64,000 nt of DNA from Phaeosaccion multiseriatum (GCA_965112735.1 OZ218957.1:1922001-1986000); one strand, 5' to 3'; positions 1 through 57,012 are shown, counted from the first letter of the stretch. Made by a program: numbers and translations. The notes: a model not told the origin generated them from the sequence alone.

Positions 1-3000
1 TCATGGAGATGGCAAAAGCATGCATTGGGGAAGCAGGCATCGAGCTCGACGCTTTGAGGCCTTTGATGGAGGCTGGGCTGGACTCCATGTCTACGGTGGA
101 GCTTCGGAGTCGACTCCAAGCTCGCTTCGGCGTGTCCGTCCCCAACGACGTGCTTTTCAGTCACCCCTCAATCGTAGCACTGTCTACCTGGCTGGAAGCC
201 TTGGTGATGGGATCTGAGGAGGATGATGAGGGTGAGAGTGAGTCGATTGGATACCAGAGGGGCGACATGAAGGCATCGTTAGCGGTGGTGGGCATGGCCT
301 GCCGCTTGCCAGGTGGTTCGAACAGCCCAGAGGAGTTTTGGGCCATGCTTAGCAATGGCAAGGACTGTGTCCAGCCTGCTCCGCTCGACCGCTGGGCGAG
401 CAAGGAGGAGGATGAGCAGCAGTGGCAAGGAAGCTTCATCGACGGCGTGGAAATGTTCGATCCATCTGTGTTCGGCATATCCAGCCCTGAGGCTTCTGCC
501 ATGGACCCACACCAGCGGGTGATGCTGGAGGTGGGACTGGAGGCGCTTGTGACTGCGGGCTATACCAAGCAAAGCCTGAGTGGCAGTCAGACCGGAGTGT
601 TCGTGGGCATGAGCGGCAGTGACTGGGGATCCCTCGGGGAAGGCTCATCCTCGACAGGCGCGTATAGCACCATGGGCGCAGCCGGGGCAAGCGTGTCCAA
701 TCGTCTGTCGTACACGCTCGGACTGCAGGGCCCGTCCATGACCACTGACACGGCGTGCTCGTCCTCTCTGGTGGCCCTGGACAGCGCTTGCAGCAGCTTA
801 CGCATGGGCAAGTGCGACGCAGCCGTGGTGGGCGGAGTGAATCTGTTGCTGGGCACGCAGAGCTTCGAAAGGCTGAAGGGAAGTGGTTTCTTATCGCCCG
901 ACGGGTACGTGCGCTTATGTGTGGAGTGCTTTCATTCCTGTTTGTGTTCACCCCTCTTCTCCCTTTGGCCATCGCCTCTCTGGCAAATCGCACAGTGAGA
1001 ACGACTTGAGTGCCTTACCAAGTCAACTTATCTCACCCCATCCCACAATTCCCATGCCCTTCTCAGGCGCTGCAAGACGTTCGACGCGTCGGCAAACGGA
1101 TACGTGCGTGGTGAAGGATGCGGTGCCGTTGTGCTGAAACTTTTGGATGACGCCCTCGCTGCCGGAGACACGGTCCTCGCTGTGATTGAGGGCTGTGCCG
1201 TGAACCACAACGGAACCAGTGCCCGCCTCACGGCCCCCAGCCCCGCCGCCCAGCAGAGACTCATCGAGGCGACGCTGCGTGAGGCCGGTCGAGAGGGCTC
1301 CGAGGTACGCATCGTGGAGGCACACGGCACGGGCACATCTCTCGGCGACCCAATCGAGATGAGTGCTCTCAGGGCCACGTACGGAAAGAACCGTGACGAG
1401 TCTTTCCCGCTGGTAGTGGGTGCGGTCAAGACCAACATTGGCCATCTGGAGGGTGCGGCGGGCATTGCCGGGCTCATCAAGGCCGTCTTGATGCTGCAGC
1501 ACCGCGCCGTGCCCGCCAACCTTCACCTCGAGAGCGTCAACCCGGAGCTGGACATGGACGGCTTCCCCGTGCAGCTCCCGTCGGTGATGGTGCAGCTGGA
1601 GGACGAGGGAGATATGTTGGTGGGGGTGAGCTCATTCGGGGCGGGAGGAACGAATGCACACGTGCTGCTGAGGAGCCATGGGGAGAAGAGTGAGGGTGCG
1701 CCAGGCCCTAATCCGGTGCAAGCAGAGACTCCAGTGGCGTTCTTGTTCACTGGGCAGGGTTCGCAGTACGTGGGCATGGGCAGGGAGCTGTACGAGAAGG
1801 AGGGCGTGTTCCGCGAGTGCATACAGCGGTGCAGCGGACTTCTCATGGAGCGGGCCTGGCTGGACAAGTCTGTGGTGGAGCTCATGTACCCTACCGCCGC
1901 TCAGGACGGGAAGGAGGAGCAGGAGAAGACTGCACAAGCGCTGCTGAAGGAGACACGCTACTGCCAGCCGTGCCTGTTTGTGCTGGAGTATGCCCTGTGT
2001 GAGCTGTGGAAGTCGGAGGGCGTGGAGCCTTCCATGGTGATGGGCCACAGCCTGGGCGAGGTAGTGGCGGCGTGTGTGGCCGGCGTCATGTCGCTGGAGG
2101 ACGGGCTGATGCTGTCCGCCAAGAGAGGGGCCGCCATGCAGGCCTGCCCCGAGGGCGATGGAGTGATGTTCGCAGTGAGGGCAGGCAAGGAGGCGACTTT
2201 GGCAAGCATCGACGCTGCGGGGGGGACAGGCGAGGTGGTGCTGGCGTCGTCGAATGGACCGAGCGCGAGCGTGATCTCTGGGGCGCGCAGTGCTGTGGAC
2301 AAGGTGGTGGAGAAGCTCACAGCCGATGGGGTGGGCTGCAAGGCCCTGGAGGTGTCGCACGCCTTCCACTCTCCTCTGATGGAGCCCGCTGTACGTGCGC
2401 TGGAGGAGGCTCTGAGGCAGGTGTCATTCAGCGCCCCACGCATTCCCCTGGTGTCCAACGTGACGGGCGAGGTGGTGAAGGCGGAAGAGGTTTCCCAGAA
2501 GACGTACTGGGAGCAGCACATGCTCTCTCCTGTGCTGTTTGCAGAAGGTATCCACACGCTGGTGGAGCACTTGATGAGGGACAGGAGGGGCTTGAATGTT
2601 GTGGAGGTGGGGCCCAATGCCGTGTTGAGCAGCATGGGAGCCAAGTGCGAGCATCGGGAGGGGCTGGTGTGGGTCTCTACTCTAAATAGAGGACAAAACT
2701 CCAACGAGGCATTTCGAGCGGCCCTGAGTAAAGTGATTGGCCGGGAGCACGTGGAGCTGTATCGGACACGCAGACCGTTTCCTTGGTACGATGTCAGGGG
2801 TAGTGGCAGGAGGAAGAAGAGAGGAAAGGGCATTGTCAAAGCTCTTCCCCCAGCGACGGCTTGGGAGGAAAGAGGAGGAGTGAGGCTGTCGGTGGAGCAG
2901 CACCCGTACCTTGCAGATCACGCAGTCAATGGTGGAGTGGTGTTGCCAGCGGCCGTCATGCTGGCAATTCTCTATGACACGCGCTGCTGCAGCACGTCAG

Positions 3001-6000
3001 GGGCCGGGGGTGAAGAGGGTGGTGGTGAGAGGACCATTTGCGACGCGGAGTTCGTTCGCTTCTTCCCAGTGAAGCAGTCCGAGGCTCAAGCTCTCGTAGT
3101 GTGCGACGATGTGTCTGGTAGTGGCAGGAGTGGCAGCGTCTCCCTGTGCAAGCCCGACAAGAAGGAGCTGCCCTACATGACAGCGAAGCTCGTGAGCGAC
3201 AGCGAGAGCGAGAGCCCTCCGCATGTACATAACGACATACACGCGCTATGGAAGGCTTGCCCGGACACGGTGGACGCCAGTCTGCTATACGAGGAGCTGG
3301 AGCGGCACACGGGCAGCCGCTTCGGCCCTGCCTTCCGGAACATTGTTGAGGCAAAGGCGGGCGACGGCGAGATGGTCGGGCGCGTACGGGTGCAAGGAGT
3401 GGCGCCGTTCGCTTTCGACCCCACGGCGCTGGAGAGCTGCTTCCAAATAGCGGGTCTGCTCGGCGGCGTCGCAGCGTTTGTGCCCACCAAGCTACGACGC
3501 CTTGTTGTGCTAACAGAGGCTGTGGGGCCGCAATTGCTGTGCCATACAAAGCTCATCGACAGGACTGCCACCAGCATCACCGCGGACATGGTGACCATGT
3601 CCCCTCGAGGAGAGGTGTATTGGAGAGTGGACGGACTGGTGCTCATGCAGCTGCCTCAGAGTCCGAATGCATGGCTGAAGCTGAGTGTGTACCACACTGT
3701 CTTCGCAGCCCCCGTAGAGTCTCCGGAGACGCCTCTGTCAGTAGCTGCAGCGGCAGCCGTGCCGTCGCGTCGCGTGTGCGTGCTAGGAATGGACAAGGAG
3801 ACGGAGGAAAGCATCGGCGTGCCGTGCGCTGACCTGGCTGAGGCTGATGTCGTGGTTGACGCACGACAGTCCGTCGAGGAGGCTGCCGAGCTGCTGCTCA
3901 AGTGTGTGGAGGCAAGCCGTGTTGGGCAAACTCTGAAAGCCCTCGTGTGGCTGGTCGTGCAGGCACCGCACACGCGGCAGGAGAAGGCACAGGAGGAGCG
4001 AAGAGCTTCCCCATCTCTCATGCTGGGATTGACTTGTGCTGCGCGCTGCGAGAACCCCTTTCTACCAATCTACTGCTTTCTGCTTCCTCCCGGCATGCAG
4101 CTCTCGGTCGGGTGGCAACACGTCCTTCCCTACATGCGGATGGAGAGGTTACCCGCAGACAAGGAGTGGCATCTCCTCCCAGGCACCGCTGCTCCCACTA
4201 CTCACGCGTGGCGTGTGCCTCGACTGCAGCTGCTGCCGAAGGAGCAGGCCGTCACACCGGAGGAACGTGCCGCGCCCGCCTTCCAGCTGCAAGTGGACCG
4301 CCCCGGGCAGCTGTCCAGCCTGCGCTGGCACGTGCTTCCTCGCTGGCCCTTGCAGGAGGGCGAGGTGCGTCTGGAGATCCACGCCGTTTCGCTGCACTTC
4401 AAGGACTTGCTGCTGGCCATGAGCATGTTGCCTGGGTTCCACCCCGTGCTGGGATTGGAGGCGGCAGGACGTGTCATCGAAGTGGGAGCAGGCGGAGAGG
4501 GGAGCACCCAACAGCACTGCATGTACTCGGTAGGCGACGAGGTGGTGAGCATGACCATGACCGCGGCCTCCAGTGACGCGCGCTACTCGCTGATGGGCAC
4601 AGAGGCCATCGCCCCCGTGTGGAGTCTGCGGCCCAAGCCGGCCAAGCTTAGTATGGTGGATGCTTCTGGCTTCTACGGTGTGACGGTGACGGCCTACTAC
4701 GCACTCATCGTGAAGGCCCAGCTGCAGCCCTCCGACACTGTGCTCGTGCACTCCGCAGCGGGCGGTGTAGGGCTGGCTGCGGTCCAAATTGCCAAGCACA
4801 CCGGCGCCACCATCATCGCCTCGGCCGGATCCGTAGCAAAGCGCGAGCTGCTGCGAGAGAGCTATGGTGTAAAGAACGTGATTGATTCCCGCGCACCCTC
4901 CAAGTTCGTCGATGAGATTCGACGCGTGACGGGAGGTAGGGGGGTGGACGTGGTGCTGAACAGCATCGCCGGGGAGGGCATGGAGCAGAGCTTGAAGGCC
5001 ATGGCTCCGCTCGGGCGCTTCGTGGAGATTGGCAAGCGCGATATTCTAAGCGACAACACGGTGCGCATGGGAGGCCTCAAGGAAAACGTGTCTCTCTTGA
5101 GTGTGCACATTGACCTGCTGATGGAGTCTCACCCGGAGGTGGTGCAGCAGCTCGTGTCAGACTGTCAGCAGCTGCTGGAGGAGGGGAAGCTCTCTCCCGT
5201 GCCCACGACTGCCTTCGCCGCAGCCGATGCGACGGAGGCCTTCAAGCTGATGCGCATGGGGTCGCACACAGGCAAGCTCGCCATCGTCATGACGGCGCCC
5301 GAGGGGGACGAGAAGAGCACTCCAACTCGCAATGTGCGTATACCTCCCTTTTTGTCCTCCTCTGTTGTGTTTGTCTGTATCCGGCGTTCCGGCGATTATG
5401 CTGAATGAGCTTTACTCATGTCCCACCCCGTCCCATCCTCCCCACCCATGACGCAGGCACGCTTCCTCCCGCAGCTCAGCGCCGACTGGACAGCCCGCTC
5501 GTCTCAAATCTTCCACAGTGCCGAAACGCTGGTAAGATCAGAGATGAGGACGTCAAGGGTAGCACTCACAACACCCTCCGCCAGAGTGGAGCAGTCGGTC
5601 ATTTGCTCTCTCTCACCTTTTAACTGTGCGGTCATCCGACAGCCTGCCTTCGCTCCATCTCTCTCTCCCTCTTGTCTCGTATCTCTCCTACGGCTGTACA
5701 GGTGGTGGCGGGAGGAGCGAGTCGGATGGGAATCTCCCTCGTGGAGTGGATGGTGACCAACGGGGCACGACACATCGTCCTGCTGGTGTCAAGGCCAGTG
5801 GGCAGTCTCTCCCGCTCCATACAGCTTCGAGTGGAGAATCTCCGCAAGACCGGCGCTCATCTGCTCGTGCGAAAGTGTGATGTGGCAGACGCGGGGGCCC
5901 TTGCCGCGCTCTTCAAGGAGGCATGTTCGCACCCGCCGCTCACGGGCATTTTCCACTTGTCCTCAGGCCACGAGACCACCACACCTGCCCGTGGGGAAGA

Positions 6001-9000
6001 AGCGACGTTTCAAATGTCAGATGTGAAGGCGATAGAGGCCGAGAATCTTCACCGCCTCTCTGCTGCCCCTGAGCACCGAGACCGAGTGCGCTACTTTGTA
6101 CTCTTCTCGTCTCTGGCAGCTGCTCACGGCAGCACCAAGCAGGCCGACGATGTGGGGGCACACGCCTCTCTTGGAGCGCTGGCGACGCACCGCCGGGCCA
6201 TGGGACTCCCTGCCATGGCCGTCAACCTTCCGTTGGTACTCGGGGCTGGCCTCTACGACGTGAGGCAATTGCGGCAGCGGCGTTCGGACTCGTCGGGCAC
6301 GGGGCTCAGCGGGGTTGAGGTTGAGCTCGTCTTTGCACACCTTCGGCGTCTGCTCCTGTACAACCAACATCTACCTGCAGAGATGAGCATCGATCGGCCG
6401 CTCTTGGACGCATATCGCAAGGCCAGCTCCAATGAGAGCTTGTACGATCTCGTGGATGAGGAAGGGCGTTTGCAGACACACACACCTATCTCTGCGAGAG
6501 AGACGCCTCAAGCACGCCAGCAGCCCCAGCACACAGGAGCGCAGCAGTTGTTGGAAGCCAGATTGGATGAGGAGAAGGAGCAGCATCGGAAAGTTTTCTC
6601 GGAGGGACACGCAAGGCTTGCTTCTGTAGTCCAGCCCGCTGTGGTGGCCCAAGTTGCCGCCCTGTTGGGAGCGGAGTGGCATGAGGTGGACCCAACGGCC
6701 AGCCTGCCCGAGCTTGGGCTGGACTCCCTGGCGGCGCTGGAGCTGGTGAACTGGGTGGGGGAGGAGTATGGTTTGACACTGTCTCAGAGCGAGCTTCTGG
6801 ACGGTGCATCAGCGAGCGATGTTGTCAACACGATCTGCTCAAGCGGAGGAGGGGGCATTGCTACTGTGTCTACACCTTCCAAGCTTTCGACTGTCGCAAA
6901 GTCGCCCCGGCAAGGCGTCAACTCTCCCGCCAGTTTTGCAGCCAATGAACCCGCCTCGCGTTCTGCCGTGGAGTCCGCTGTGGTGGCCCAAGTTGCCGCC
7001 CTGTTGGGAGCGGAGTGGCATGAGGTGGACCCAACGGCCAGCCTGCCCGAGCTTGGGCTGGACTCCCTGGCGACGCTGGAGCTGGTGAACTGGGTGGGGG
7101 AGGAGTACGGTGTGACACTGTCTCAGAGCGAGCTTCTGGACGGTGCATCAACGGGCGATGTTGTCAACACGATCTGCTCAGGCGGAGGAGAGGGCATTGC
7201 TACTGTGTCTGCACCTTCCAAGCTTTCGACAGTCGCGAAGTCACCCCGGCAAGGCGTCAGCTCTCCCGCCAGCTTTGCAGCCAATGCACCCGCCTCGCGT
7301 TCGGTCGTTGAGCCCGCTGTGATGGCCCAAGTTGCCGCCCTATTGGGGGCAGAGGTGCATGAGGTGGACCCAATGGTCAAGCTGCCCGAGCTTGGGCTGG
7401 ACTCCCTAGCGACGCTGGAGCTGGTGAACTGGGTGGGGGAGGAGTACGGTGTGACACTGTCTCAGAGCGAGCTTCTGGACGGTGCATCAGCGAGCGATGT
7501 TGTCAGCGCGATCACTGCGGACGGAAGTGCTCGAGAGAGCTACGCTGGAAACGGGTATCAGCGATCACGACAGCAATCGCTGCGCGCAACTGCAGTGCCT
7601 GAGCGAGTGGAGAAGGCGGCCCCTCTGTCCACACCTCCACCCACTCTCGCTTATACGAGCATTGCTGTGCCGCCCAAGCTGACAGTGGAGAGTACCCAGC
7701 GACTTCTGGCCGAGATCAAGCGCGCAAAGGGCGTGATTGCCTTCAGCGGAGGAAGCGCCACCGAGCCGTTCTGCCTGGGAGCGGATCTCGAGGGTGCGGG
7801 GGGCTTTGGTACCGACGCTATGGCGGAAACGCTAGAGAGCTTCCGACGGCTCCAGGAGGTGCTCAACGCGTACCCTTCTCCGATCATCGTGGTGGTGAAC
7901 GGCGCGTGCAGAGGAGGGGGCATGCTCTTCCCCTGCTGCTCGACCGTGTCCATTGCGGATAACGAGAACGCCTCCTTTGCCTTCCCAGAGATCCGCCGAG
8001 GGGGGCTGCCCGGCTTGGTGTCGGTGTCCGCTCAGCTGCGCATGACGAAAGCGCAAGTGACGAGGCTAATGTGCACTGCTGACGTCATTACTGCGGCAAG
8101 CGCACTCAACTTGGGGCTTGTTGATATCGTCACAGCCAATGAGGAGGAGGCGCATGTGGAGATGAAGCGCCTGGTGCAGCGCTTCCGTAGCATTCAACCC
8201 GACCTGCTCGAGCGCTGTGTGACGAAGTATCCATTGACCACCCCGGCGGAAGCAGCAGTGGAGATGGGCCGGTTCATGGCACCTCCTCCTCCCGCGCACG
8301 ATCCGAAGCTGGTGGAGGTGTCGTACAGGGGTGAAGGAGGGGGGGTGGCGGTGGTGGAGCTCACCGATCTGCAGCACTTTAATGCTATTTCTCGCAGCCT
8401 GTCCTCGGCCCTGTCCTCGGCCCTGGAGGAGGTGACCAGCAGCAAAAGGGTTCGCGCCGTGGTGCTGCAGGGGCGAGGGCGGCACTTCTGTACCGGAGCC
8501 AACCCTGCGGAATTTGCGGAGTCTCTTAAAACGCTCCCCGTGATGGCAGCTGCCCAGCTCGTCTTCGAGGTGTACGAGCCCTTTGCGCGGCTGTGTGAGC
8601 TCAAACTCCCCGTCATATGTGTGAGCCACGGCAAGGTATGAAGATGTTGGGCATCAAGCGGTGATGGTTGCTCTATTTCTCGCACGTTGTTGTGTTCCTA
8701 CGTCGATTCGCCGTCGCTGAAATGCCCTCCTCGTTCGCTCCTTGCGGTCTCTCTTGTGCACCAGGTGCTTGGAGGAGGGCTCGCCGCAATGCTGAACTCG
8801 GACTTCCGTATCGCAGTGGCGGGGAGCGTCTACAACTACGGAAACCTCCCGCGGGGTGTGTGCCCAGGCCTACTCCTGTCCCGTAACCTCGAGCGCACTG
8901 TAGGAGCCCCTGCCGCCATGGCGCTGTACCTCCGTGACGATGTGCTGAGCTCCAGCGACGCTCTCTCTGCCGGGCTCGTGCACGAGGTGTGCCCCACCCT

Positions 9001-12000
9001 ACAGGAGGCGCAGGATCGAGCTTTGGAGCTTGCTGAGACCATTTCCTCCTCTGCAAAGGGCGGTGTGGATCAGACGCTGATGCTCATGAGGCCAGACTTT
9101 GATCGGGCTCGCCTGGCAACGGAATCCCTGGTAAGCGCAACATGATCGCACATCTAGAGCTTCAGTCATCACCTCTGTACATTGCTCTGAGCTCCACGTC
9201 CTCCATCTAATCCGCGAATGTTTCTCTTGTCACGTGTAGGGCCTCGCCATGTGCGTGACTTCGGGAAAAGCGTTTTCGGACTCTTCGCAGTGGAGCTCGA
9301 CAGCTTTCCAAGAGGCTCTTCGTCGAAAGGGTAGGGAGGGGCTGGAGGCTCTGACCGCTCCTACTGCTTTGGTAGCGGAGAGAGGAGGGGCGGACACAGC
9401 ACCCCCAACACAGCAACTCCAGCCGCCAAGCCCCGGCCCACTCACCGCAGAGCCTGCTGTGACAAGCCCACCGCCAGAGCCTTCCACCGCCAGCAAGCCC
9501 ACACAGCCCCCCTTGGCTTCAGGGCAGGGAGGGAACCAGAGCCGGAGTAGAAGAGGAGCAGGGGGCAATGTCGGCATCCATGCCATGGAACTGTACGTGC
9601 CCAACCTGTCCGTCAAGCAGACCGACATGGAGGCTTTGTACGAGTGCCCCGGCAAGTTCACCGTCGGCCTGGGGCAGGAGGCGCTGGGCTTCTGCCACCC
9701 CTGCGAGGATGCTGTCTCCATGGCCATGATGGCGCTACACGGACTTCTGACCAAACATGGCGTTCGCTGGCAAGACGTGGGCAGGCTGGAGGTAAGACGG
9801 GGCAAGGTGTGCTCACAGTGAGAACAGCCATGCCAGCAGATGATACCGAAGGTGTGAGTGAGAGGGTTGTGTAAGAGAATGAGCTTAGTCGATGTCCCCA
9901 CGCGTGCTCCGCCTGCTCCTGCTGCTGCTAATCATCGCCCCGACCAGGTTGGCACGGAGTCCTCTGTGGACTACAGCAAGAGCATTAAGACATATTTGAT
10001 GCAGCTCTTCGACAACGCCGGGTGCAACGACGTGGAGGGCGTGGACAGCATCAACGCGTGCTATGGCGGGACGGCGGCACTCCTCAACGCAGCGGCTTGG
10101 TGCGGCAGCGAAGCCTGGGACGGGCGCTGGGCGGTAGTAATTTCTTCGGACTGCGCCTTCCTCCGCCCACCGCAAGACTTTTTGAACGGTGCTGCTGCTA
10201 TCGCCATTTTGGTGGGTCCAGAGGCGCCAGTGGTGCTGGAGCCCTGCCGAGCGACTCATATGACGCATAGTCACGACTTCTACAAGCCTGTTGGTAGGCC
10301 CGACCCCTACCCCTTTTTCCTTGCCAACGATGGAGGGGTCAGCGTGAAGCTGTACGAGGAGTCGCTCAGGCAGTGCCTCTGTCGCCTGCAGAGAGAGCTC
10401 CAGGCGCCGCTCGTTGGGGATGGCGGCGTGACAGACTACTTCGCCTTCCACTGCACCAGCACGTACCTGTGCAAGCGTGGCTTCAAGGTCCTAACCACGG
10501 GGGTGAAGGGACTGGGATTCGGTACGTTTGCCCGGAATTGTTGTCACAGACAGCACCCCCTTCTTGTCTGTGTGGCACATGCATGTTGTGCTCTACCACT
10601 CTCTTACTTGTCGCCCCATGCCAATGGCCTGTCTGTTTGTCTGTCTACTTCCTTTCTCATGTGAAACAGAGGCCAAGAAGGCGCTGTACGACGAGCGCTG
10701 CGAGCCATCCACCAGAGTCACCAAGCAGCTGGGGTCCACCTTCGCCGCCTCGGCGTATGTGAGCCTCTACTCGCTGTTCGTTAACGCGGAAGTGGACGGG
10801 CTGGACTTGCGAGACAAGCGCGTGTTGGTGTACTCGTACGGCTCAGGATCGGCCGCTACTCTGTACTCGCTCAAGGTACGGACTCCGCCAGCGATTAAGG
10901 GCGGAAGAGGCATGGGCATGATGGAGCGGCTGCGCCAGCGAGAGGTGGTGCATCCCGAGGTGATGCAGGCGAGCATGAGAAGGCGCGTGGAGTTGCTGCA
11001 CAGCGCAGACTACACGCTCGAGCCGGAGGGACTGCTGCCGGGCACTTTCTTCCTGCAGTCGGTGGATGCTGCGGGAGTGCGGTGCTACGCCCAGTATAGT
11101 ACACTGGGCGCCGACAGCCCCATCGTCCCCCTTGAGCAAGTCTCCGTGGCATTAGATGGTGAAGCTGTCATGCCACTTCCTCTGCGGCTGGCACCAGCTG
11201 CAGCGCCACCACGTCCCTCTGCATCGAAGCACATCGCCATTGTGGGCATGGCGTGCCGCTTCCCCGGGGGCGCTGACAGCCCTGAGCGTCTGTGGCAGCT
11301 GCTCTGCGAGGGCATCGATGCTGTCGGGCCCTTTCCCACAGACCGGTGGGGAGAGGTGGGCAGCGAACAGCACACGTATGCCAGAATGGGAGCGTTCTTG
11401 GACGACGCACATCTCTTCGACTACAGAAAGTACGGGCTCACGCATAGAGAGGCTGAGCACATGGATGTGAACCACCGCATAATGTTGGAGGTTGCGGACG
11501 CGGCCATGATCAATGCGGGTATGGGAGGCGGAGAGTTCTCAGGCACCAGCTCAGAGTCCAAGCACAGTCGCAGCTCCACGGGTGTGTTCGTGGGGTGCAA
11601 CAACGTCGAGTGGCTTCTATCCCAATGTATCGAGGGCCAGGGTGAGGGTGCGAAGCTGGGCGTTGCGAGGGTGCCAAAGACAGGGGCCTACACCCTGGTG
11701 GGCGGTGCTCCAAGCTTCGTGGCAAGCCGGCTCAGTCATCACCTCGGTCTCGGAGGGCCCTCTATGGGATTCGACATGGCCTGCTCGTCCTCCTTTGGTG
11801 CCATCCACGCGGCCGTATCGAGCTTGCGCAGCGGCGAGGTGACTGCTGCAGTGGTGGGCGGTGTCAACATCATGTCCTTGCCTTTCGCATTCGACTGGAT
11901 GGCCAAGCTGCAGCTACTGTCCAAGATTGGTCGGTGCGCTGCTTACGATATCGCCGGTGATGGCTACGCGAGGGGTGAGGGGTGCGGGGCGGTCGTGCTG

Positions 12001-15000
12001 AAGCGCTTGGAGGACGCCGAGGCGAGCGGCGACAACGTGCTCGGGGTCATTCTTGCGTCCGCTCTCACGAACAACGGGTGTCAGGACGAGGAGCAAAGCA
12101 GCGGCAGCAGCAGCAGCAAAAAGGCCAGCATCGCTGCCCCGAATGAAAACGCTCAACGGAAGGCCGTGAAGCAGGCGCTCGCGCAGGCGGGTGTGGCGCC
12201 TTCAGAGGTGGGCTTTGTCGAGGCACATGGTCTGGGCTCACCGATGGGAGACGCCATGGAGCTCCGTGTGTTGCAGAGCGAGCTGCGCGGTAGCAGGACT
12301 AGCACTTCATCCACATCATCATCATCAGTGGTGGCGCCTCTGCTCGTGAGCACCACCAAGCCCAACATGGGAAATCTGGAGGGCGCCGGAGGTATGCTGG
12401 CGCTGATCAAGACTGTGGTCGCGCTTCAGCACGGCTTTGTGCCGCCGAATATTCACCTTCATACGCCTCATCCCCGCTTGGAAGTGGACAATACAGCAAT
12501 ACGGCTGCCCTCTGCTGGCGCAGGGAACGCTCCCTTTGAGGGGAGTGTGGCGGGCATGCACTGCTATGGCATCTCGGGAGTCAACGCGCATGTTCTAATC
12601 AGGAAGGGGCTGCACAGGTTGCTCACGTCGAGCGAGGAGAGGAAGACACGAGGATGAAGACAGCTTTCCCGTGGCCCGCAGCCCCCTGTACTGAGATGCG
12701 TCGTCCTCCGACAGTTCTGGCCTCGGCGAAAGGTACTTATGAGACGGAGATGGCCTTGAAGCCGCCTCGCGACGAGATTCAACGCTCAACGACGACCGAA
12801 GTGATGGCCATAGCGAGGAGTTATCTAGGGCAGAACGGGGAGAAGCTGAGGGAAAATACTTCACTGATGGAGGCAGGCCTTGATTCGCTGGCACTGGTAG
12901 AGATGCGTGGCCAGCTGCAGTCTCGCTTTGGGGTGAACGTGTCCAGCGATGTGCTCTTCTCCAATCCGACCGTAGCAGCGGTGGCTGCGTGGGTGGAAGC
13001 GGAAGTGCTTGGAGCGGACACAGGATCTCCCACTGTTCGCTCTATTGGCGGTGCAAGCACTCTACGGAACCAAGCCGACTCGACCGCGCAGCTGGCCGTT
13101 ATTGGCATGGCGTGCCGCTTCCCTGGCGGTGCGAACAGCCCCGAGGCCTTCTGGGCCATGCTGTCTGCAGGTACGGACTGTATTGGTGCGGCGCCTGTCG
13201 ACCGCTGGGCAGACGATGGCAAGCAGAAGCAGTGGCACGGGGGCTTCATTGACGGAGTGGAGATGTTCGACAACGCCTTCTTCGGCATCTCGGCCGCCGA
13301 GGCACAGGCCATGGACCCCAACCAGCGACTCATGCTGGAGGTGGGATTCGAGGCCCTTCACCAGGCTAGATACGAGAAGGGCACACTACAAGGCAGCAAG
13401 ACAGGCGTGTTTGTGGGCATGTCTGGGAGCGACTGGGGCTTGGTGGTTGCAGATGAGAACAAAGGCGCATATTCCGTGATGGGCACGTCCAACGCAAGTC
13501 CTGCCAACCGAATGTCCTATGTCCTCGGACTGAGGGGACCGAGCATAAGTGTAGACACTGGCTGCTCGTCATCATTGGTTGCGCTGGATGCCGCATGCAG
13601 CAGCTTGAGACGGGGCAAGAGCAATCTCGCCGTGGTGGGAGGCGTAAACTTGCTCCTGGGTACCGATGACTTCGAAGCTCTCGCAGCGGGGGGATTCCTT
13701 TCACCTGACTGGTAAGTGCATTGAGTGGGCGTGCTCTTTTCTCTTGTTTTCTGGCTGGGCATCTCGCTTGGGGGAGGGAACGGCTTGTAGCTATGCACCT
13801 ATACATTTGCTCACAAATATCCATCTCATTGCCTCTGTCATGCCCTATCCGCGCCATCAGGCGTTGTAAAACCTTCGATGCATCGGCCAAGGGTTACGTT
13901 CGAGGTGAGGGCTGCGGCGCCGTGGTACTGAAGCGACTGGACGATGCACAGACCGCTGGCGACCACATTCTCGCCGTGGTGAATGGGTCTGCTGTGAACC
14001 ACAACGGCAGGTCCGTGCGCTTTACTGCACCCAACCCACTTGCACAGCAGGAGGTGATAAGGGAGGCTCTTGCGGAGGCCGACTTTGGTGGCTTGGACGT
14101 GCACTACGTTGAAGCACACGGCACAGGCACCTCTCTGGGCGACCCAATCGAGATGAGTGCTTTGAGGGCCGTATACGGCAAGGGTCGGGAGGAAGCGAGG
14201 CCTCTGGTGGTTGGGGCGGTGAAGACAAATGTCGGGCACCTCGAGGGTGCTGCGGGTATCGCTGGCCTCATCAAGGCAGTGCTTGTCCTTCAGCATGGAG
14301 CTGCCCCGCCCAATCTCAACCTGAACAAGCTGAATCCCGAGCTGCAACTCAAAGACTTTCCAGTGACATTACCTTCTGCCACGGTACCACTGAGTGGCGA
14401 GAGTGGAGAGACGCGCATCGCTGCCGTCAGCTCCTTCGGAGCTGGTGGGGCCAACGCACATGCTGTGCTCAGCAGCTTCGGAGCAGCGATGGTCGACAGG
14501 GGTGAGGCCCTGCCAGAGCCGGCTGAGCAGGACAGACGCATGAGCCCCCTAGTGGCGTTCTTGTTCACGGGACAGGGCTCACAGTACGTGGGCATGGGCA
14601 GAGATCTGTACGAGAAGGAGGGTGTGTTTCGCGAGTGCGTGCAGCGGTGCAGCGGACTTCTCACGGAGAGAACGTGGCTGGACAAATCTGCGGTGGAGCT
14701 CATGTACCCTAGTGCTGAGGAAGAAAAGAGCGCACAGGCTCTGTTGAAGGAGACACGCTACTGCCAGCCGTGCCTGTTTGTACTGGAGTACGCCCTGTGC
14801 GAGCTGTGGAAGTCGGAGGGCGTGGAGCCATCCATAGTGATGGGCCACAGCCTGGGCGAGGTAGTGGCGGCGTGCGTGGCCGGCGTCATGTCGCTGGAGG
14901 ACGGGCTGATGCTGTCCGCCAAGAGAGGAGCCGCCATGCAGGCCTGCCCCGAGGGCGATGGAGTGATGTTCGCAGTGAGGGCAGGCAAGGAGGCGACTTT

Positions 15001-18000
15001 GGCAAGCATAGACGCTGCAGGGGGGGCAGGCGAGGTGGTGCTGGCGTCGTCGAATGGACCGAGCGCGAGCGTGATTTCTGGAGCGCGCAGTGCTGTGGAC
15101 AAGGTGGTGGAGAAGCTGACGGCAGATGGGGTGGGCTGCAAGGCCCTGGAGGTGTCGCACGCCTTCCACTCTCCTCTGATGGAGCCCGCTGTACGTGCGC
15201 TGGAGGAGGTTCTGAGGCAGGTGTCATTCTGCGCCCCACGCATTCCCCTGGTGTCCAACGTGACGGGTGAGGTGGTGAGAGGGGAAGAGGTGACGCAGGT
15301 GACGTATTGGGTGCAACACATGCTGTCGCCAGTGCTGTTCGGAGAGGGCATCCACACGGTGGTGGAGCATTGGATGGGAGACGGGAGGGGGACTGACCTG
15401 AGCATCGTTGAGGTGGGCCCCAACCCTGTGCTGAGCAGCATGGGAGCCAAGTGCGAGCGTCGCGAGGGGCTGGCGTGGATCTCCTCCCTCACGCGAGGGC
15501 AGAACGCCGAGGATTCGTTTGGAGCAGCCCTAGGCAGTATAGCGGGGCCGGAGCATCGTGAGCTTTATCCGACTCGCCGATCATTTCCTTGGTACAAGCC
15601 TCCGCTGGCCTTTATGCCTAGCGGTGAGGTGGTGCGGGAAGGAGACGGAATGAGGCTCGCCAGCCCGTTCTCCCCTCATCTCAAGGACCTTCTCAAGGAC
15701 CATGCCGTCAACAATGTGGTGATCATTCCGGGGGTGACATACATTGAAGTGGGCGTTGTGGCTGCTCTAGGAGGAAGACAGCTCGGAGTGGAGCAGCAGG
15801 TAGTCCTGCAAGGAGCCAGCTTTGTGGTTCCACTGGAGATTGAGGGTTTCCAACAGGCCGGCACGGACCAGGCTCAAAGCCGCTATACAATGGTCTGTGC
15901 CGGGATGAGTGCCCTTCACGCGGCAGATGGAAGCATGCAGTTCTTCGGAGGTGCCACGGGCGACAAGGGTACCACGGCAGGAATGAAGCACGCATCTGTC
16001 ACAGAGCGAAGCTCGGGGCGTGTTTCTCTGCACGTGGAATCCATTCGAGCTAGAGTTGGCGAGCAGGACGTATCGAGTGAGCTCTACAAGTCATTCGAAG
16101 ACGCCGGCTTCCAGTACGGCCCCCGCTTTCAGCGGACCCGCCACATGTACGGAGGGGATGGAGAGGTTCTGTCGGTCGTGTGTGCCATGGATGAGGAGCT
16201 GTGCGAGCCGTGGGAGATGAAGGGCTTTGCTCTGCACCCCGCGGTGCTGGACAATGCTACCCATACCATCATGCAAGCGCTGCCAAGGAAGCTGCTCAAG
16301 AAGGGGGGGGACTCTCCATTCCTACCTGCAGGCTTTGACGAGGTGGTCGTTTCCGCCGCCATGACGGGAAAAAATGTGTGGGTGCACACGAAGCTGAGTG
16401 AGGTCCAGTCAGTGGCGGACAGCGTCAAGTTTGACATCCGCATTGCAGACTTCGACAGCAAAGAGGTGCTCGTGGAGATGCGGGGCTTCCGCGTGGAGCG
16501 GGCGAGGGGCTTTGCGCGTGTGAGTCCCGTTCGTCGTGCAATGTACGCATTGGAGTGGCACGCCGCTGAGCCGTCTACACAGGAGGAGGCCCCTGGTAGT
16601 GATACTGACGCTGCTGAGGCGGCGGTGCCACAGAAATGGCTGGTGGTTATTCCACAGGACGAGAGGGAGGAAGAGATGTCAATCATTGCTGCGGCACGGC
16701 GCTGCGTTCCGGAGAACGTGCACATACACACTCGATATAGGAGGGTGGAGGCCTCCGGGGATGATGGTGCTCTTCTTCTTGGACAGGACGAGTGGACTCG
16801 AGTCTTGTACGTGCCGATCTCTGGGGATGACAAAGAATACGTAGAAGGGGGTCAGCAAGCACGAGCGGCCTACGCTCTGTTATCGCTACTCAGGAGCATG
16901 TCCACTACGTCGAATGTGCCGCTGACGGTCTTGACGAGCGGCGTCCAAAGCGGCGAGGACTGGCGTCACAGCTGGGTGACTGGGCTGGTGCGGACTGCGA
17001 GGGTGGAGCACCCCTCCATGCAGATTGGTGTGGTGGACCTGAGCGACAAGGAGGTCCAAGACAGCGAGGTTGCCTTAGGCTTGGCCTTCCCTAATGCCAC
17101 AGAAGAAGTGTGGGTACGCGACGGACAGTGCTGGGCTCCTCAGCTTGTACGTCAGCCCCTGCAGCTTCCCTTCTCACTTGATTTGAAGGCAAGAGGCAGC
17201 ATTGCCAACGCTTTCGCCCTTCGTGATGATGTGAACCATGGCAAACATCAGCCCCTTGACCCAGCTGGAAGCTCCGTAGAGGTGGGGGTGAGGGCCGTTG
17301 GGCTGAACTTCCGGGACGTGCTGAATGTGCTGGACATGTACCCTGGCGACCCTGGAGATCCCTGCACCGAGTTTGCCGGGGAGGTGATCAGTGTGGGAGC
17401 AAGCTCGCGCTTCCGTATCGGCGATGCAGTGTTTGGCTTTGGCGATGCGGGATGTTTGCGCAGTCATATGACGACGAGTGATGTGTGTCTGGCCGTGATG
17501 CCGGCCGTGCTGAGCTTCGAGCAGGCCGCTGCACTTCCCACTGTATGCTTGACGGTAGTGAAGGCCTTCCACGACCTCAAGGCTGGAGAGAAGGTGTTGA
17601 TTCATGCCGCATCGGGCGGTGTGGGCCTTGCCGCCGTGCAGTATGCTCAGCGGGTGGGAGCAGAGGTGTACGCTACTGCCGGTGCTGCTGTGAAGCATGA
17701 CTTCCTCCGGAGCTTGGGAGTGGAGCACATTGCGTCATCGAGAGACGCGGAGGCGTTCAAGCAGTCCATGGGTGACATGAAGGTAGATGTGGTGCTCAAC
17801 TCACTAAGCGAGGATTACATTCCCTTCTCATTGGACATGCTGACAGAGGGAGGCAGATTCGTGGAGATTGGGAAGAGAGGTGTATGGAGTCACGAGCAGA
17901 TGCGCACCGCCCGGCCTGGTATAAGGTACGAGCTGCTGGCATTGGATAGTATGATTGAGTCTGACTTCGTAGCTCGTGAGCCAGGCTGGATCAGTGCCGG

Positions 18001-21000
18001 GCTGCAGCGTCTTGCTGATGACTGCATGTCTGGCGATGTGAAGCCCTTACCGACCATACCCTTTGACATGAGGGAGGATACTCAGAAGGCCATGGCACTC
18101 ATGAGCCAAGCGAAGCACGTCGGTAAGGTGGTGCTGACCAACCCCTCGTACGGTGTGCCAGTAGTGTCCGATGGCACGTACGTCATCAGCGGCGGTCTGG
18201 GGGCTCTCGGCCTTGTGACGGCCCAGCACCTCGCGTCGAGGGGCGCTCGTCACTTGGTGCTGCTGTCGAGGAGTGGGAAGGTCGCTGAGAGCATGACAGA
18301 GCAGTGGCAGCAGCTTCAGAACAAGGTGGAGCTGATCCATACTCCTACTTGTGATGTTGCTGACGCTGAGGCACTTCGGACTTGCCTGGGGGGCGTGCTG
18401 CCTCTGCTGCCCCCTGTGCGCGGCGTGGTGCATGCTGCCGGGGTGCTGGATGATAAGCTGCTGGGAGAGCAGACGGTGGAGAGCGTGACGAACGTCTTCC
18501 GACCGAAGATGCAGGGGGCGGTGAACTTGCACGAGCTTTCGTTGGCTTGGGCGAAGGAGGAGGGGCGCGCCCCTGGCCTTGACTTCTTCTTTTGCTTCAC
18601 ATCCATGGCCGGAGTACTGGGCAACGCTGGACAGGCCAACTACGCTGCCGCAAATGCGGCTGTGGACGGGCTGATGCGGCACAGGCGACACCTCGGGCTC
18701 ACAGGGACGTCATTGCAGTGGGGGCCGTGGGCTGATGTGGGTATGGCTGCTCAGCTCGATATCGTTCAAAAGCAGTTGGAGCTGGCGGGTGTGGGCACGG
18801 TGTCAGCTGAGCTGGGCATGGCTGCCTTAGATGCCGCTGCGATGCCGTCAGCGTATTTGGGCGATGTGGCTGTTTTGCCAGGGATGGACTGGGGCAAGTT
18901 TGCAGACAGCTTGGGTGCGTCCCGCGGCTCGTTCCTGCTGTCAGGGCTTGTCTCAACAGCAGCAGGCGCGTCCAGCAACACCGAAATCAACAATGAAGTG
19001 CGCGAGGCGCTCTTGAGACTGCCCCCTGGCGAGCGACAGCAATCAGTGCGATTGGCGGTGCTTGATATCGCCAAGGACCTCCTTGGGGAGGGTGCCGAAG
19101 AGCTGGACGCGAACACGCCTTTGATGGAAGCAGGTCTTGACTCTTTATCAACAGTGGAGCTGCGCGGCCGGCTACAGGCTCGCTTCGGGGCTGTAGTGAC
19201 CACTGACGTGCTCTTCGCGTATCCCACGGTAGCGGCGCTGGCAGTGTGGATCGAAGCGGAGGTGCTTGGCGAGGAAGAGGAACCCTCTAGCAGTCGCTCT
19301 GCGGCGATCGCTGCAGAAGCGCACCGCACTGACTCAAGGGCGCCGCTGGCCGTCGTCGGGATCGCCTGTCGCTTCCCTGGAGGGGTTAAGAACCCCGAGG
19401 ACTTCTGGACTATGCTCTGTGCAGGGACAGACTGTATTGGAGCCAGCCCTGTTGGTCGCTGGGCCGATGAGGGTCAGAAGCAGTGGCAAGGGGGCTTCAT
19501 TGATGGAGTGGAGGCTTTTGACAATACCTTCTTCGGCATCTCGGCGGCCGAGGCGGGTGCCATGGACCCTCATCAGCGCGTCATGCTGGAGGTGGGGTAC
19601 GAGGCTCTGCACAGGGCGGGATACCGCAAGGACACACTACATGGCAGCAACACCGGTGTGTTCGTGGGTATGTCCGGCAGCGAGTGGGGCTCAGTGGTAG
19701 ACGATGCGAACAAGGGTGCGTACTCCGTCATGGGCATGTCCAATGCGAGTCCGGCAAATCGGATGTCTTACGTGCTGGGCCTCGGAGGGCCGAGTATGAG
19801 TGTCGACACGGCGTGCTCGTCGTCTTTGGTGGCACTGGAAGGGGCCTGCAGCAGCTTGCGACTGGGCAAGTGTGACATCGCCTTGGTGGGAGGCGTCAAC
19901 TTGTTGCTGGGTACACAGAGGTTCGAGACCCTCGCCGAAGGAGGTTTCCTGAGTCCTGACTGGTAAGTGCGTGTCTCTTTTGTGTGAGTGGGAACTTGTT
20001 CTTGGGGCCGCTATGAGAGCCAGATCAAAAGGCCCAAGCTGTCTGAAAGGCCCCCTGTTGCTGATGGATTACCTCTTGTCTGTTCTTCACTTTTGCAAAC
20101 CCTCAATTCCCCATGGTCAGGCGCTGCAAGACGTTCGACGCTGCGGCCAACGGTTATGTCCGAGGTGAAGGCTGCGGCGCCGTGGTGCTGAAGCGACTGG
20201 ACGATGCACAGGCCAATGGCGACCACATCCTCGCTGTCGTCAATGGCTGCGCTGCGAACCACAACGGGAGAAGTTTGCGCTACACTGCCCCGAGCCCTTC
20301 TGCTCAGCAGCGTCTGATGGAGCAGGCACTGGCGGAGGCCGGCTTGAGCGGTCTGGAGGTTGATTACGTGGAGGCACACGGCACCGGGACTTCTCTCGGC
20401 GACCCCATCGAGATGAGTGCTTTGAGGGCCGTGTACGGCCATGGCCGCGAGGAAGCTCGGCCCCTGGTTATTGGGGCGGTGAAGACCAATATCGGGCATC
20501 TAGAGGGTGCCTCCGGAATCGCTGGCTTCATCAAAGCTCTGCTGGTCCTTCAGCATGGATCTGCTCCCCCCAATCTCCACATGAGGAAGCTCAATCCGGA
20601 GCTTCGTTTGGATGGCCTTCCGGTGACTTTGCCGTCTGCCATGGTGCCACTAAGTGCCAGGGATGGGGAGAGGCGCACTGCTGCCGTAAGCTCCTTCGGC
20701 GCGGGAGGAGCCAACGTCCATGCGGTGCTCAGCAGCTTCGGACCAACGTTGGTTGAGAGGGGCGAAGTCTTGCTGCAGCTGGATGGACAGCATAGCAAGA
20801 AGCGTTCAGCGGTGGTGTTCTTGTTCACAGGACAGGGATCGCAGTACGTGGGCATGGGCAGGGAGCTGTACGAGAAGGAGGGCGTGTTCCGCGAGTGCGT
20901 GCTGCGGTGCAGCAGGCTGCTCATGGAGCGGAGCTGGCTGGACAAGTCTGTGGTGGAGCTCATGTACCCAGCGGTCGCTGAGGACGGGAAGGAGGAGGAG

Positions 21001-30000: not shown

Positions 30001-33000
30001 TCAAGCAACAGGTCTTTCGCACTACTCCTTGGATGCTGACGCCCCCGCGGCTTACCAGCAGGAGCACATGTACCTTTCGGACGTAGCACTGCGGACGACT
30101 GCCCCTGGAGGGCAGAGCGCGTACAATCTCCCAGTGGTGCTGCCGCTGCCAGTCTCGCTGATCTCCGGACGAACATCCGCTGAAATTGTGGACATGCTAG
30201 CACAAGTGTTGGGCAGCATAGTGGAGCGACATGACGTGCTCCGGACGGCGCTTGAGTGGACAAAGCAGGGCTCTCTGAGGCAGGTACAGCTTGGAACTAC
30301 GGCAGCCGCGGTGGTGTCAGCTTGTCTCTCTTCTGCCGTGGCCAGCAGTGTTGGGGCGGCTCGGAGCCTGATCGAGGCCGATATCGCTCGTACATTCGAT
30401 TTGGAGCGGAGCCAGCCTCTATGGCGTACGTTGGTCGTACACCTCCCGCAGCAGAGCGGAGTGGAGGAGCAGTATGCTGCGGTATCTACTTTCCATCATT
30501 GCATCTTTGATGGTGTATCCTACTTGCTCTTCCAGGGCGAGTTCAAGGCCACATGCGCAGCTGCCATGGCGGGGAGAGGCATTGCACAAGACCTACCGGC
30601 TCTGCCCTTCAGCTTCGCGGACTACTCCAGGTGGCAACGAGCTCGGCTGGACGGCGAAGGTCGTATTGAGGAGCTGCTTGAGTACTGGCAGGGTCAACTG
30701 GCTGGTACCAGTCCACTGCAGCTGCCTCTCCATCAGCGACATGCCCAAAAGGGCCTCATTGGAGAAATGGTGCATGAAGATATCAGTGTGGGAGGAAGTG
30801 GGAGGGTGAACTTGGTGCTACCCAATGCAGTGGTGGTCAAGTTGAGTAAACTGTGTGCGGATAGCTCCGCCACGCTGTTTGTGGGGCTCATGGGCGCGTT
30901 CCAAGTGCTGCTGGCTCGTGTGTGCGGAGCGGAGGATGTGGTGGTGGGCACTGCTCACTTCGGAAGAGACTTGGCGCAAGGCTTGGAGGGTGTGCTGGGA
31001 TGCTTCGTCAACACCCTCGCGTTCCGTCTGGGCCTGGGAGGAAGCCCCAGCTTTCGGGAGGTGCTGCTTCGCGTACAGGTCGCGTATCTGGGTGCCATGA
31101 AGCACGCCGAGGCGCCATTCCACAAGGTGGTGGAGCGGGCCCAGCTGGGCAGAGATGAGCGTGGCAAGGCGCTACAGGCATTCTTTGTACTGCAGGAGGC
31201 GGGTTTGGATATTTTGAAGGATCAGTACGCGGGTGTGGACACTTGGAAGAATAATACGACTGACATCGAGCTATGCCTTGTGCGCAGCACGGACAGTGCG
31301 TCGGACATGCACGGCAGCCTGTGCTTCAATACGGCGGTGCTCGACAAGGCCACAGTGGAGACCCTGGGGCGGAGCTTTGTGGCGCTGCTGGAGAGTGCAG
31401 TGGGCAGGCCGGGCGAGAGCGTGTGGAAGCTGAGTCTCTTGGCACACGAGGACCGTGTGAAGGTGGTGGAGACATTGAGCGGCGCTGCACTGGTGGCGGG
31501 GGGTGCAAATGGAGATGAGGAGGGAGGTGCAGAGGAAGTATCGCCACCACCGCCCCTCCTGCATGCAGCTTTCGAAGAGATGGCCTCTCGCAGTCCGGAG
31601 CAAGAAGCCTTGCACGAGTATGAGACAGGTCGGGTGATGAGCTACGGGGAGCTGAATGGGCATGCGAATGCGGTGGCATGCATGCTGCAGGGGAGGGGCG
31701 TGGGGCCGGAGTGCCTGGTGGGGGTGCTGATTGCTGGGGACTGCGTGGAGGCGGTTGTGGCAGTGCTGGGCGTGCTCAAGGCCGGGGCGGCGTACGTGCC
31801 CCTGGATCCCGAGCATCCCGACGATAGGCTGTCGATGATCGCACAAGACGCCGGGCTGAACGTCGTTCTGACAGCAGCATCTGGGGCGGACCATGTGGAA
31901 CAAGGCCCACCCTCAGGCGGTAGGTCGGCTCGCACCGTCGGAGACGCGAGCTGTGTGGATGTGAGGACCATGATGCAGCTCGAGGGGGCTGCTACGACAG
32001 TCTCTGAGGTGGAGTGCAAGGCCGTCGACATCAATGTGGCGTATGTGATATACACGTCTGGCAGCACCGGGCGACCGAAGGGTGTGGTGGTCGAGCATAG
32101 AAACGCGGCCAGCTTCATGGCGACTCTATACGAAACGATGCTCGGCACCATAGACCCTTCGTCACGGGTTCTGCAGAGCAGCGCTTTGACTTTCGACATG
32201 TCGGTGACGTTGATCTTCGGGGCTCTGTCATGCGGGGCGACGCTGTGCCTGGTGCAAAGGCTCTCCATGTTGAGCGAGCTGCCAGAGGTTGTGCGCTCGC
32301 TTGGGGTATCGATCTTGATGTGCACTCCGTCACTACTGTCCTTGCTCCCACAGCCTCATGGTGGAGAAGTGGCTTTCCCGAGTCTTCGGTCGATCGCGCT
32401 TGGGGGAGAGGCCTTACGTCAAGAGCAGGTCGAGTACTGGAAACACCGAGTGCGACTGTGGAACGGATTTGGACCCACCGAGACGACGATGGTAGTTACC
32501 TGCCACGAGTACACACCTTCTGCCGTGCCGAGCGCGTCCGTCATCGGCAAGCCCCAAGCCGGCGTGCAAGTGTATGTGGTGGACAAGCGTCTGCAGCTGG
32601 TGCCTCAGGGCGTGGAGGGCGAGCTGTGCATTGGGGGGAGACAGCTGGCGCGTGGGTACTTGAATCGCCCAGAGCTCACGTCGAAGGCCTTCATCCCCGC
32701 GCCCTTCCTGACGGATCAGCGCAGAGTGTATCGTACGGTAAGTCGAAAAGGTTGCCCATGGGTGTGCGGCTTTGTGTAGTGTACATTTGGCTTGCTTTTG
32801 GCATGCCATGCCGTGAAAAGCAGAGACCGCAGGGGGAGGTAGTTCTCTCTGTTGCCCTGTGGCACTGTTCTCCCCCCTCATCTGACGCGTCTCAAACTTA
32901 ACACGTTCTGACAGGGTGACTTGGTGCGGCAGCTGGCAGACGGATCGCTGGTGTTTAGGGGTCGCCGAGACTCTCAAGTGAAGGTGCGCGGCCATCGCAT

Positions 33001-56978: not shown

Positions 56979-57012
<34 letters not shown>

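Follow-up and report, generated by a model that had tools for sequence, protein, structure and literature searches.

A giant PKS-NRPS gene and its module A

The window analysed here, a stretch of 64,000 nucleotides from the alga Phaeosaccion multiseriatum (GCA_965112735.1 OZ218957.1:1922001-1986000; assembly of 67 Mb in 22 contigs), carries on its + strand, from position 1 to about 43.6 kb, a single giant gene that is fragmented in open-reading-frame lists. This gene encodes a hybrid of polyketide synthase (PKS) and nonribosomal peptide synthetase (NRPS). The subject of this work is the module at the start of the window, module A, in which a ketoreductase (KR) with altered catalytic residues and a retained enoyl reductase (ER) stand beside a beta-branching cassette built on an HMGS domain.

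The gene is eukaryotic, and the breaks in its reading frame are spliceosomal introns and not frameshifts. The intron junctions follow the pattern GT, pyrimidine tract, AG. Every ketosynthase (KS) is interrupted at the identical site, in the SPDG|RCKTFD motif, in modules A, B, C and D alike, and the adenylation domains are all split at one common profile position. Domain searches were run on each exon, with the mini-exon and the exon of the KR treated individually.

The acyl carrier protein (ACP) of an upstream module comes first in the window. It is followed by module A itself, KS-AT-DH-ER-KR-ACP-ACP-ACP (AT, acyltransferase; DH, dehydratase), by ECH1-ECH2-HMGS and by a KS-ACP pair. Downstream are found modules B and C, each with the full KS-AT-DH-ER-KR-ACP set, and module D (KS-AT-KR-ACP), and the 3' part of the gene encodes three condensation-adenylation-thiolation (C-A-T) modules and a terminal domain. 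The positions of the features of module A and its surroundings are collected in Table 1. The region considered in the original prediction, 2890-6350, is not one open frame; the ER exon stops at 5333, and two introns and a mini-exon occupy the ER/KR junction. The mini-exon contains an AET motif conserved with bacterial orthologues, and its identity to the corresponding stretch of the two paralogues described below is 100% and 96%.

Table 1. Module A and adjoining features, in window coordinates.
Feature	Position	Strand	Basis or remark
Upstream-module ACP	~27-200	+	Pfam PP-binding
Module A KS, N-terminal exon part; catalytic Cys 753-779	279-904	+	Pfam ketoacyl-synt; donor GT at 905
GT-AG intron in KS at SPDG|RCKTFD	905-1066	+	
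KS C-terminal half (HGTGT 1317-1337, NIGH 1431-1445), linker and AT (GHSLGE 2043-2060, HAFH 2358-2369)	1067-2730	+	
DH1; His motif 2916-2948; Glu 3432-3434 for Asp of DxxxQ	2853-3740	+	
Structural (pseudo-)KR subdomain and linker, DH1 to ER1	3741-4277	+	Position; weak homology to the same stretch of orthologues
ER1; SLHFKDLL 4389-4412, NADPH glycine motif 4749-4772, EIGKRD 5019-5042	4278-5333	+	
Intron GT..AG, ER exon to mini-exon	5334-5456	+	
75-nt mini-exon, encoding the strand just ahead of the KR glycine loop	5457-5531	+	
Intron GT..AG, mini-exon to KR exon	5532-5701	+	
KR0 catalytic subdomain; AGGASRMG 5708-5731, Tyr->Asp 6149-6151, Asn->His 6161-6163	5702-6355	+	
Three tandem ACPs; Ser at 6716-6733, 7055-7072, 7394-7411	6662-7492	+	
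ECH1	7673-8269	+	
ECH2	8342-8635, then ~8765-9115	+	Second part past an intron starting at 8636
HMGS, three exon pieces; Cys motif 10050-10070	9567-11094	+	Glu and His motifs present
AT-less KS (11233-12489), then one ACP	11233-12971	+	

The ketoreductase, the dehydratase and the branching cassette of module A

The six motifs on which the original prediction relied were all located on the + strand of the window. In the KR of module A, hereafter KR0, GGASRMG lies at 5711-5731 and QADDVGAH at 6140-6163, the latter facing QANYAAAN at 18632-18655 in module B. The strings quoted jointly for modules B and C are exact for module B, whereas module C reads QANYGAAN and GLNFRDVM, one residue off in each case.

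When KR0 was aligned to its sister domains in modules B, C and D, the alignment was free of gaps and confirmed the expected exchanges of Tyr for Asp and of Asn for His as well as the Arg in the glycine loop. Equally gap-free alignments with two solved domains, the KRs of AmphB and EryAI, and with 12 orthologous loci likewise placed Asp at the catalytic Tyr and His at the Asn, which is the residue four positions past the Tyr; the Arg takes the place of the middle Gly of the TGxxxGxG cofactor loop. The catalytic Lys (DVKAIEAE, 6020-6043) and Ser (FSSLAAAHG, 6104-6130) are retained. The Pfam KR profile (PF08659) gave 106 bits for module A, against 177-203 bits for modules B-D. Because Tyr, Asn and the loop Gly are replaced with respect to the solved KRs, the sister modules and the orthologues, KR0 is almost certainly catalytically dead.

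The fold of KR0 is still recognisable, whereas the catalytic Tyr and the complete NADPH loop are lost and the domain is kept inside its module, as is the case for the inactive KRs of modular PKSs. KR0 differs from these in that it stands in a beta-branching module with a retained ER. As far as the KR0 sequence goes, module A has what is expected of the acceptor module in beta-branching, a ketone left unreduced. A word-indexed search of 5.8 billion proteins for close relatives of KR0 found none above 41% identity. An epimerase-only role was considered for KR0 and rejected: the AT with its HAFH motif, which we take to be of the malonyl type, gives no substrate for it, and the Tyr is gone.

In DH1, the Glu reported in place of the catalytic Asp was seen in PTALESCFQ at 3420-3446. 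The catalytic His motif is intact, and the second motif reads ExxxQ, compared with DxxxH in modules B and C and DxxxQ in the orthologues; the Asp is retained in 10 of the 10 orthologous loci checked. Since dehydratases of the FabZ type employ Glu, the exchange need not inactivate DH1; it is real but conservative and, judged from the residue, says little on activity. With KR0 dead, DH1 has no obvious substrate.

The cassette itself looks competent, in line with the original prediction of a functional unit. The HMGS domain matched both PF01154 and PF08540, its GTES, NACYGG and FHC motifs align with those of the orthologues, and the catalytic Glu, Cys and His are all present. ECH1 and ECH2 are two crotonase-fold domains, 43% identical to the ECH1/ECH2 of the orthologue P0001. 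Furthermore, all three ACPs of module A carry a Trp nine residues past the Ser, as do the ACPs of the orthologues checked (P0001, P0005 and P0006). This Trp, a mark of branching ACPs (PMC10006238), is missing from the other ACPs of the window, namely the upstream ACP, the one after HMGS and those of modules B and C.

The AT-less KS that follows HMGS has kept its Cys and the first His (HGLGS), and NMGN stands for NIGH. As the second His is thereby an Asn, this KS presumably just passes the chain on, and the KS-ACP pair is probably a non-elongating transfer unit rather than a decarboxylating KS of the Cys-to-Ser type. No such Cys-to-Ser decarboxylating KS, and no donor ACP to go with it, was found within the window.

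A bacterial family of fused synthases and its enoyl reductase

To find orthologues, the KR-ACP-ECH exon was compared, without a profile, with 1.84 billion representative proteins, and bacterial genomes and metagenomes were scanned as well. These searches revealed a family with the layout KS-AT-DH-ER-KR-ACPn-ECH1-ECH2-HMGS in at least five bacterial phyla. Its sources include Dyella, Nitrospirales, Rhodospirillales, Myxococcales, Symploca and Acidobacteriota, and its loci include L012, L014, L016, L018, L022, L024, L025, L026 and L028. One locus (L015) had frame breaks next to each other, as is typical for long-read contigs of low coverage, and was not treated as eukaryotic. The metagenome loci L029-L032 (HMGS only, on short contigs) and L033-L034 (weak matches of 26% to the ECH part) have no bearing on the KR. 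In the literature, no paper was found on this family or on algal fused cassettes.

At the seven bacterial loci with full flanks, the proteins are single-module, stand-alone synthases of about 3,100-3,650 residues, and no further PKS domain was found in the flanks, which extend over about 3 kb on the upstream and 4-10 kb on the downstream side. That these enzymes may work iteratively is our guess from this layout.

Whether orthologues share the KR lesions of the alga had been set beforehand as a check, and none does; an intact KR in orthologues with the cassette is what the original prediction had named as its refutation. The glycine loop, Lys, Ser, Tyr and Asn of the KR are intact in 12 of 12 distinct orthologous loci bearing the cassette, and three additional fragments keep at least Lys, Ser, Tyr and Asn or Gln. 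The view that a dead KR is part of the logic of the cassette is refuted by these intact domains, which does not make the algal KR an active one. On the alignments, the inactivation of the KR is a derived state specific to the alga and not the general logic of the cassette. The algal domain also shares with the family an unusual KR subtype with the signature LPxxAxxLPxxLGAG; by its sequence, it is an orthologue stripped of its catalytic residues and not another type of domain. The same subtype, with the Tyr intact, was seen in a protein of 901 aa (P0003), where it precedes four ACPs and a hexapeptide-repeat domain of the left-handed beta-helix type, which recalls the hexapeptide match in the terminal domain of the window (41025-43637).

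Algal module A and the bacterial family have in common the order of domains from DH to HMGS, the clade of the ER, the KR subtype and the Trp-flagged ACPs. They differ in context: the bacterial synthases stand alone with a single module, whereas the algal unit comes after the ACP of another module and before modules B-D and the three NRPS modules. The KR and the DH Asp are intact in bacteria and lost in the alga. In addition, the KS of module A shares 59% identity with the alga's own KSs and 37-42% with those of the family.

Concerning ER1, the original prediction was right that the NADPH motif is kept and that the domain diverges from its counterparts in modules B and C, SLHFKDLL standing against GLNFRDVL at 17300-17323 in module B; the family-invariant EIGKRD motif is kept as well. 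The proposal that ER1 had been repurposed from a domain of that kind did not hold, as the FKD signature instead marks a separate clade of ERs which travels with the cassette. The identity of ER1 amounts to 43-49% with the cassette-fused ERs and to 29-32% with those of modules B and C. Maximum-likelihood analysis placed ER1 together with all the cassette-fused ERs in a clade with 100/100 support on a long stem; the ERs of the two sister modules and 14 further ERs of PKSs fell outside it. When compared with PDB entries, ER1 scored 165 bits with CurK, 157 with MAS, 136 with CurF and 133 with JamJ. Its assignment to the CurF/JamJ type was rejected, since ordinary ERs score higher and the domain lies upstream, between DH and KR.

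The conservation of each algal domain was followed at the positions that are invariant in the seven bacterial members. Retention was 88% for the ACPs, 83% for ECH2, 82% for the ER, 79% for ECH1 and 76% for HMGS; lower values were obtained for KS (70%), DH (64%), AT (62%) and KR (55%, or 38 of 69 positions, the lowest among all domains). With 88 of 107 positions kept, ER1 is on a par with the cassette domains (79%, p=0.55), and its retention is higher than that of KR0 (p=1.4e-4). Relative to the family, it is the best-conserved enzyme domain of module A, with 0.87 bits per residue. This pattern suggests that ER1 is functional and linked to the cassette.

A second arrangement was found in a Dyella jejuensis protein (L017, 3773-12751), which starts with an AprA-type loader (AprA_N, winged helix, MT2-like) and continues with KS-ACP-ER-ACP-ECH1-ECH2-HMGS; an alpha/beta hydrolase gene lies next to it. 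This protein has no AT, DH or KR. Its ER is nested in the cassette clade and stands between ACPs, before ECH1-ECH2-HMGS. The same layout was observed from the methyltransferase domain on in P0002, a truncated representative, where the ER is again kept and AT, DH and KR are absent. Because these three domains are gone and the ER remains, the ER in this arrangement can, on its domain content, only serve the branch. By its layout, the Dyella jejuensis protein gives the impression of a compact enzyme that would produce a small branched acid in one pass. It resembles module A in having no working KR and an ER retained beside the cassette, but AT, DH and KR are deleted from this single bacterial protein, whereas in the alga the KR is inactivated in place.

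The neighbours of the family loci were checked at three sites: L012 and L016 have a thioester reductase and a GXWXG/DUF4334 protein nearby, whereas L025 is accompanied by genes for a cupin protein, a methyltransferase and an MMPL transporter. The synthase of L014 (P0006, 3272-14221) has a carnitine/choline acyltransferase domain fused at its C-terminus. Its operon is bacterial-looking, with P0006 placed after a methyltransferase of the cyclopropane-fatty-acid-synthase type, an aspartate decarboxylase and a TauD-type oxygenase.

Within the algal genome, three PKS-embedded HMGS genes were found, and contig C14 carries a fourth one that stands by itself. The two embedded copies outside the window, on contigs C3 and C1, contain the same module, and all module A exons are open in all three. 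The copy on C3 (366,500-386,499; L008+L010) is 97% identical in DNA over 16 kb. For the copy on C1 (about 2,403,700-2,416,400; L009+L011), a 12.6-kb block corresponding to window positions 1847-14481 is 95% identical, introns included, and comprises the AT from its middle, DH, ER, KR0, three ACPs, ECH1/2, HMGS and KS-ACP, into the next KS. The upstream KS of the C1 copy is only about 70% identical, with a synonymous divergence (dS) above 1. The block from mid-AT to the next KS looks like the product of a recent duplication or gene conversion between genes.

The three copies share the Tyr->Asp and Asn->His exchanges and the Glu of DH. Since the C1 copy has Tyr->Asp yet retains the loop glycine, the Tyr lesion predates the Gly->Arg exchange, which points to a stepwise decay of the KR, the catalytic lesion being the older and the cofactor loop having been broken later. 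Among the genome copies, the ratio of non-synonymous to synonymous divergence (dN/dS) was 0.39-0.47 for ER1 (6-13 changes), weakly below 1, and 0.08-0.26 for KS and AT.

Proposed route and competing explanations

HMGS cassettes act on beta-ketones (PMC10006238). In the apratoxin pathway, HCS, ECH1, ECH2 and an ER are predicted to yield a saturated pendant methyl group, and the branching module has no KR; the action of an ER after ECH2, as the original prediction required it, thus has a published precedent (PMC3075265). The cassettes of curacin, jamaicamide and apratoxin consist of ACP, KS, HCS, ECH1 and ECH2-ER (PMC3075265, PMC3252866). Module A shares with them an HMGS and ECH1/ECH2 acting on a beta-ketoacyl chain, tandem ACPs, the lack of a working KR and an ER to finish the branch. 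It differs from them in several respects: all parts are joined in cis within a single eukaryotic gene, the ER lies in the DH-ER-KR loop upstream of the ACPs and not after ECH2, and the window holds neither a Cys-to-Ser KS nor a separate donor ACP.

We infer every chemical step of the following route; what was observed directly is the presence of the lesions, of the family and of the ER clade, and the pattern of conservation. KR0 would be a folded but dead remnant, so that the beta-ketoacyl chain on the three ACPs would stay unreduced. The fused HMGS would add an acetate unit to the ketone, ECH1 would dehydrate and ECH2 would decarboxylate. ER1 would then most likely reduce the 3-methyl-2-enoyl thioester so formed, which would give a single saturated methyl branch, and the chain would be handed on to module B by the AT-less KS-ACP. 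Everything between DH and HMGS would have been inherited as one block from the fused synthase family, in which the KR is intact. The KR would have been lost in the algal lineage only, probably once the block acted one time per chain in an assembly line, and its decay would be ongoing.

To the reading that a dead KR, branching by HMGS and saturation by ER1 act together in a block inherited as a unit we assign a probability of about 0.6; the saturated beta-methyl group is plausible in the light of the domains present. The description of the product as phytanoyl-like, made earlier, was overstated, as one cassette per gene would give one branch. It had been supposed that the KR was inactivated to expose the ketone and that ER1 saturates the product. 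The dead KR, the precedent for the ER and the conservation of ER1, the best of the loop, are in agreement with this; a need of the cassette for the death of the KR is not.

Several observations weigh against our reading. In the orthologues, the same cassette runs with an intact KR, so the death of the KR is unneeded for branching and may be neutral decay. ER1 has no specific kinship to the characterised ERs of CurF and JamJ. The isomer produced by ECH2, either the alpha,beta form needed by an ER or the beta,gamma form, is not predictable from sequence (PMC11350588). Finally, the algal copies are recent (dS 0.02-0.05) and so are not independent witnesses, and the changes between them are too few to give dN/dS much power (3 synonymous against 9-10 non-synonymous for KR0, 6 against 7 for ER1).

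The alternative closest to our reading concerns the cause of the KR lesions. They may be neutral decay that followed the move from an iterative stand-alone synthase to a one-pass line, the HMGS having already outcompeted the ancestral KR. In favour of this, the cassette is paired with an intact KR at each of the 12 orthologous loci, the glycine-loop lesion is younger than the Tyr lesion, and KR0 shows 3 synonymous and 9-10 non-synonymous changes between copies. However, iteration in the bacteria is deduced only from their single-module, stand-alone state, and this explanation departs from our reading in cause and not in outcome; the present data do not separate the two. We consider it a serious possibility, although not the one we would choose.

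A different product would be obtained if the whole reductive loop (DH1, ER1 and KR0) were inherited baggage. Branching would still occur, but the product would keep a 3-methyl-2-ene or an exomethylene group. The loss of family-invariant catalytic residues from DH1 and KR0 fits this idea, and so do the unpredictable regiochemistry of ECH2 and a dN/dS of ER1 that is only weakly below 1. It is made unlikely by ER1 itself, whose cofactor motif is intact and which is the best conserved of the enzyme domains, and by the independent lineage that deleted DH and KR and kept the ER. Decay could also extend to the entire locus, or to the present copy, with the lesions of KR and DH as its first signs; three near-identical copies and two altered catalytic motifs in one module would be compatible with that. 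We regard this as very improbable, given the open module A exons in three copies, the canonical GT-AG introns, the low dN/dS of KS and AT and the intact catalytic motifs of the cassette. Hardly credible is, lastly, a reduction of the ketone by KR0 through non-canonical residues, or by a KR in trans, which would leave a normal methylene while the cassette acts elsewhere. KR0 keeps its Lys and Ser and a recognisable fold, but the catalytic Tyr is essential in short-chain dehydrogenases as a general rule, the cofactor loop contains an Arg, and the Trp-flagged tandem ACPs are found in module A and nowhere else in the window.

If our reading is correct, the chemistry is one already known from cyanobacterial pathways, in which the lack of KR activity, an HMGS cassette and an ER lead to a saturated methyl branch, and no new kind of system is involved. 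New are the layout, with the ER placed in a normal reductive loop and all parts joined in a single eukaryotic gene that is split by introns, the distinct ER clade that accompanies the cassette across bacteria and an alga, and the state of the KR, which varies with context: intact in the stand-alone synthases, deleted in one lineage and inactivated by point changes in the alga. The predicted algal product is a lipopeptide with one acetate-derived saturated methyl branch. The bacterial family can be flagged as expressible, and the question it raises is the choice between KR and HMGS on the same carrier.

More tentatively, the fused family might represent widespread, undescribed programmed iterative synthases of branched lipids, in which the loop serves both ordinary cycles and the saturation of the branch, the alga being a case of conversion to a one-pass module. 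This wider proposal is rather doubtful at this stage; if true, the alga would show a useless KR, and perhaps DH, caught in decay while the ER stays under selection.

In the 3' part of the gene, the three C-A-T modules (32779-41003) are near-identical, and in each of them an intron separates the adenylation core from its C-terminal subdomain, always at the same position (gaps at 32779/32921, 36516/36658 and 40241/40386). Downstream of the PKS-NRPS gene, an open reading frame of 751 aa (56105-58360) gave three matches to WRKY19-type zinc fingers (PF24906).

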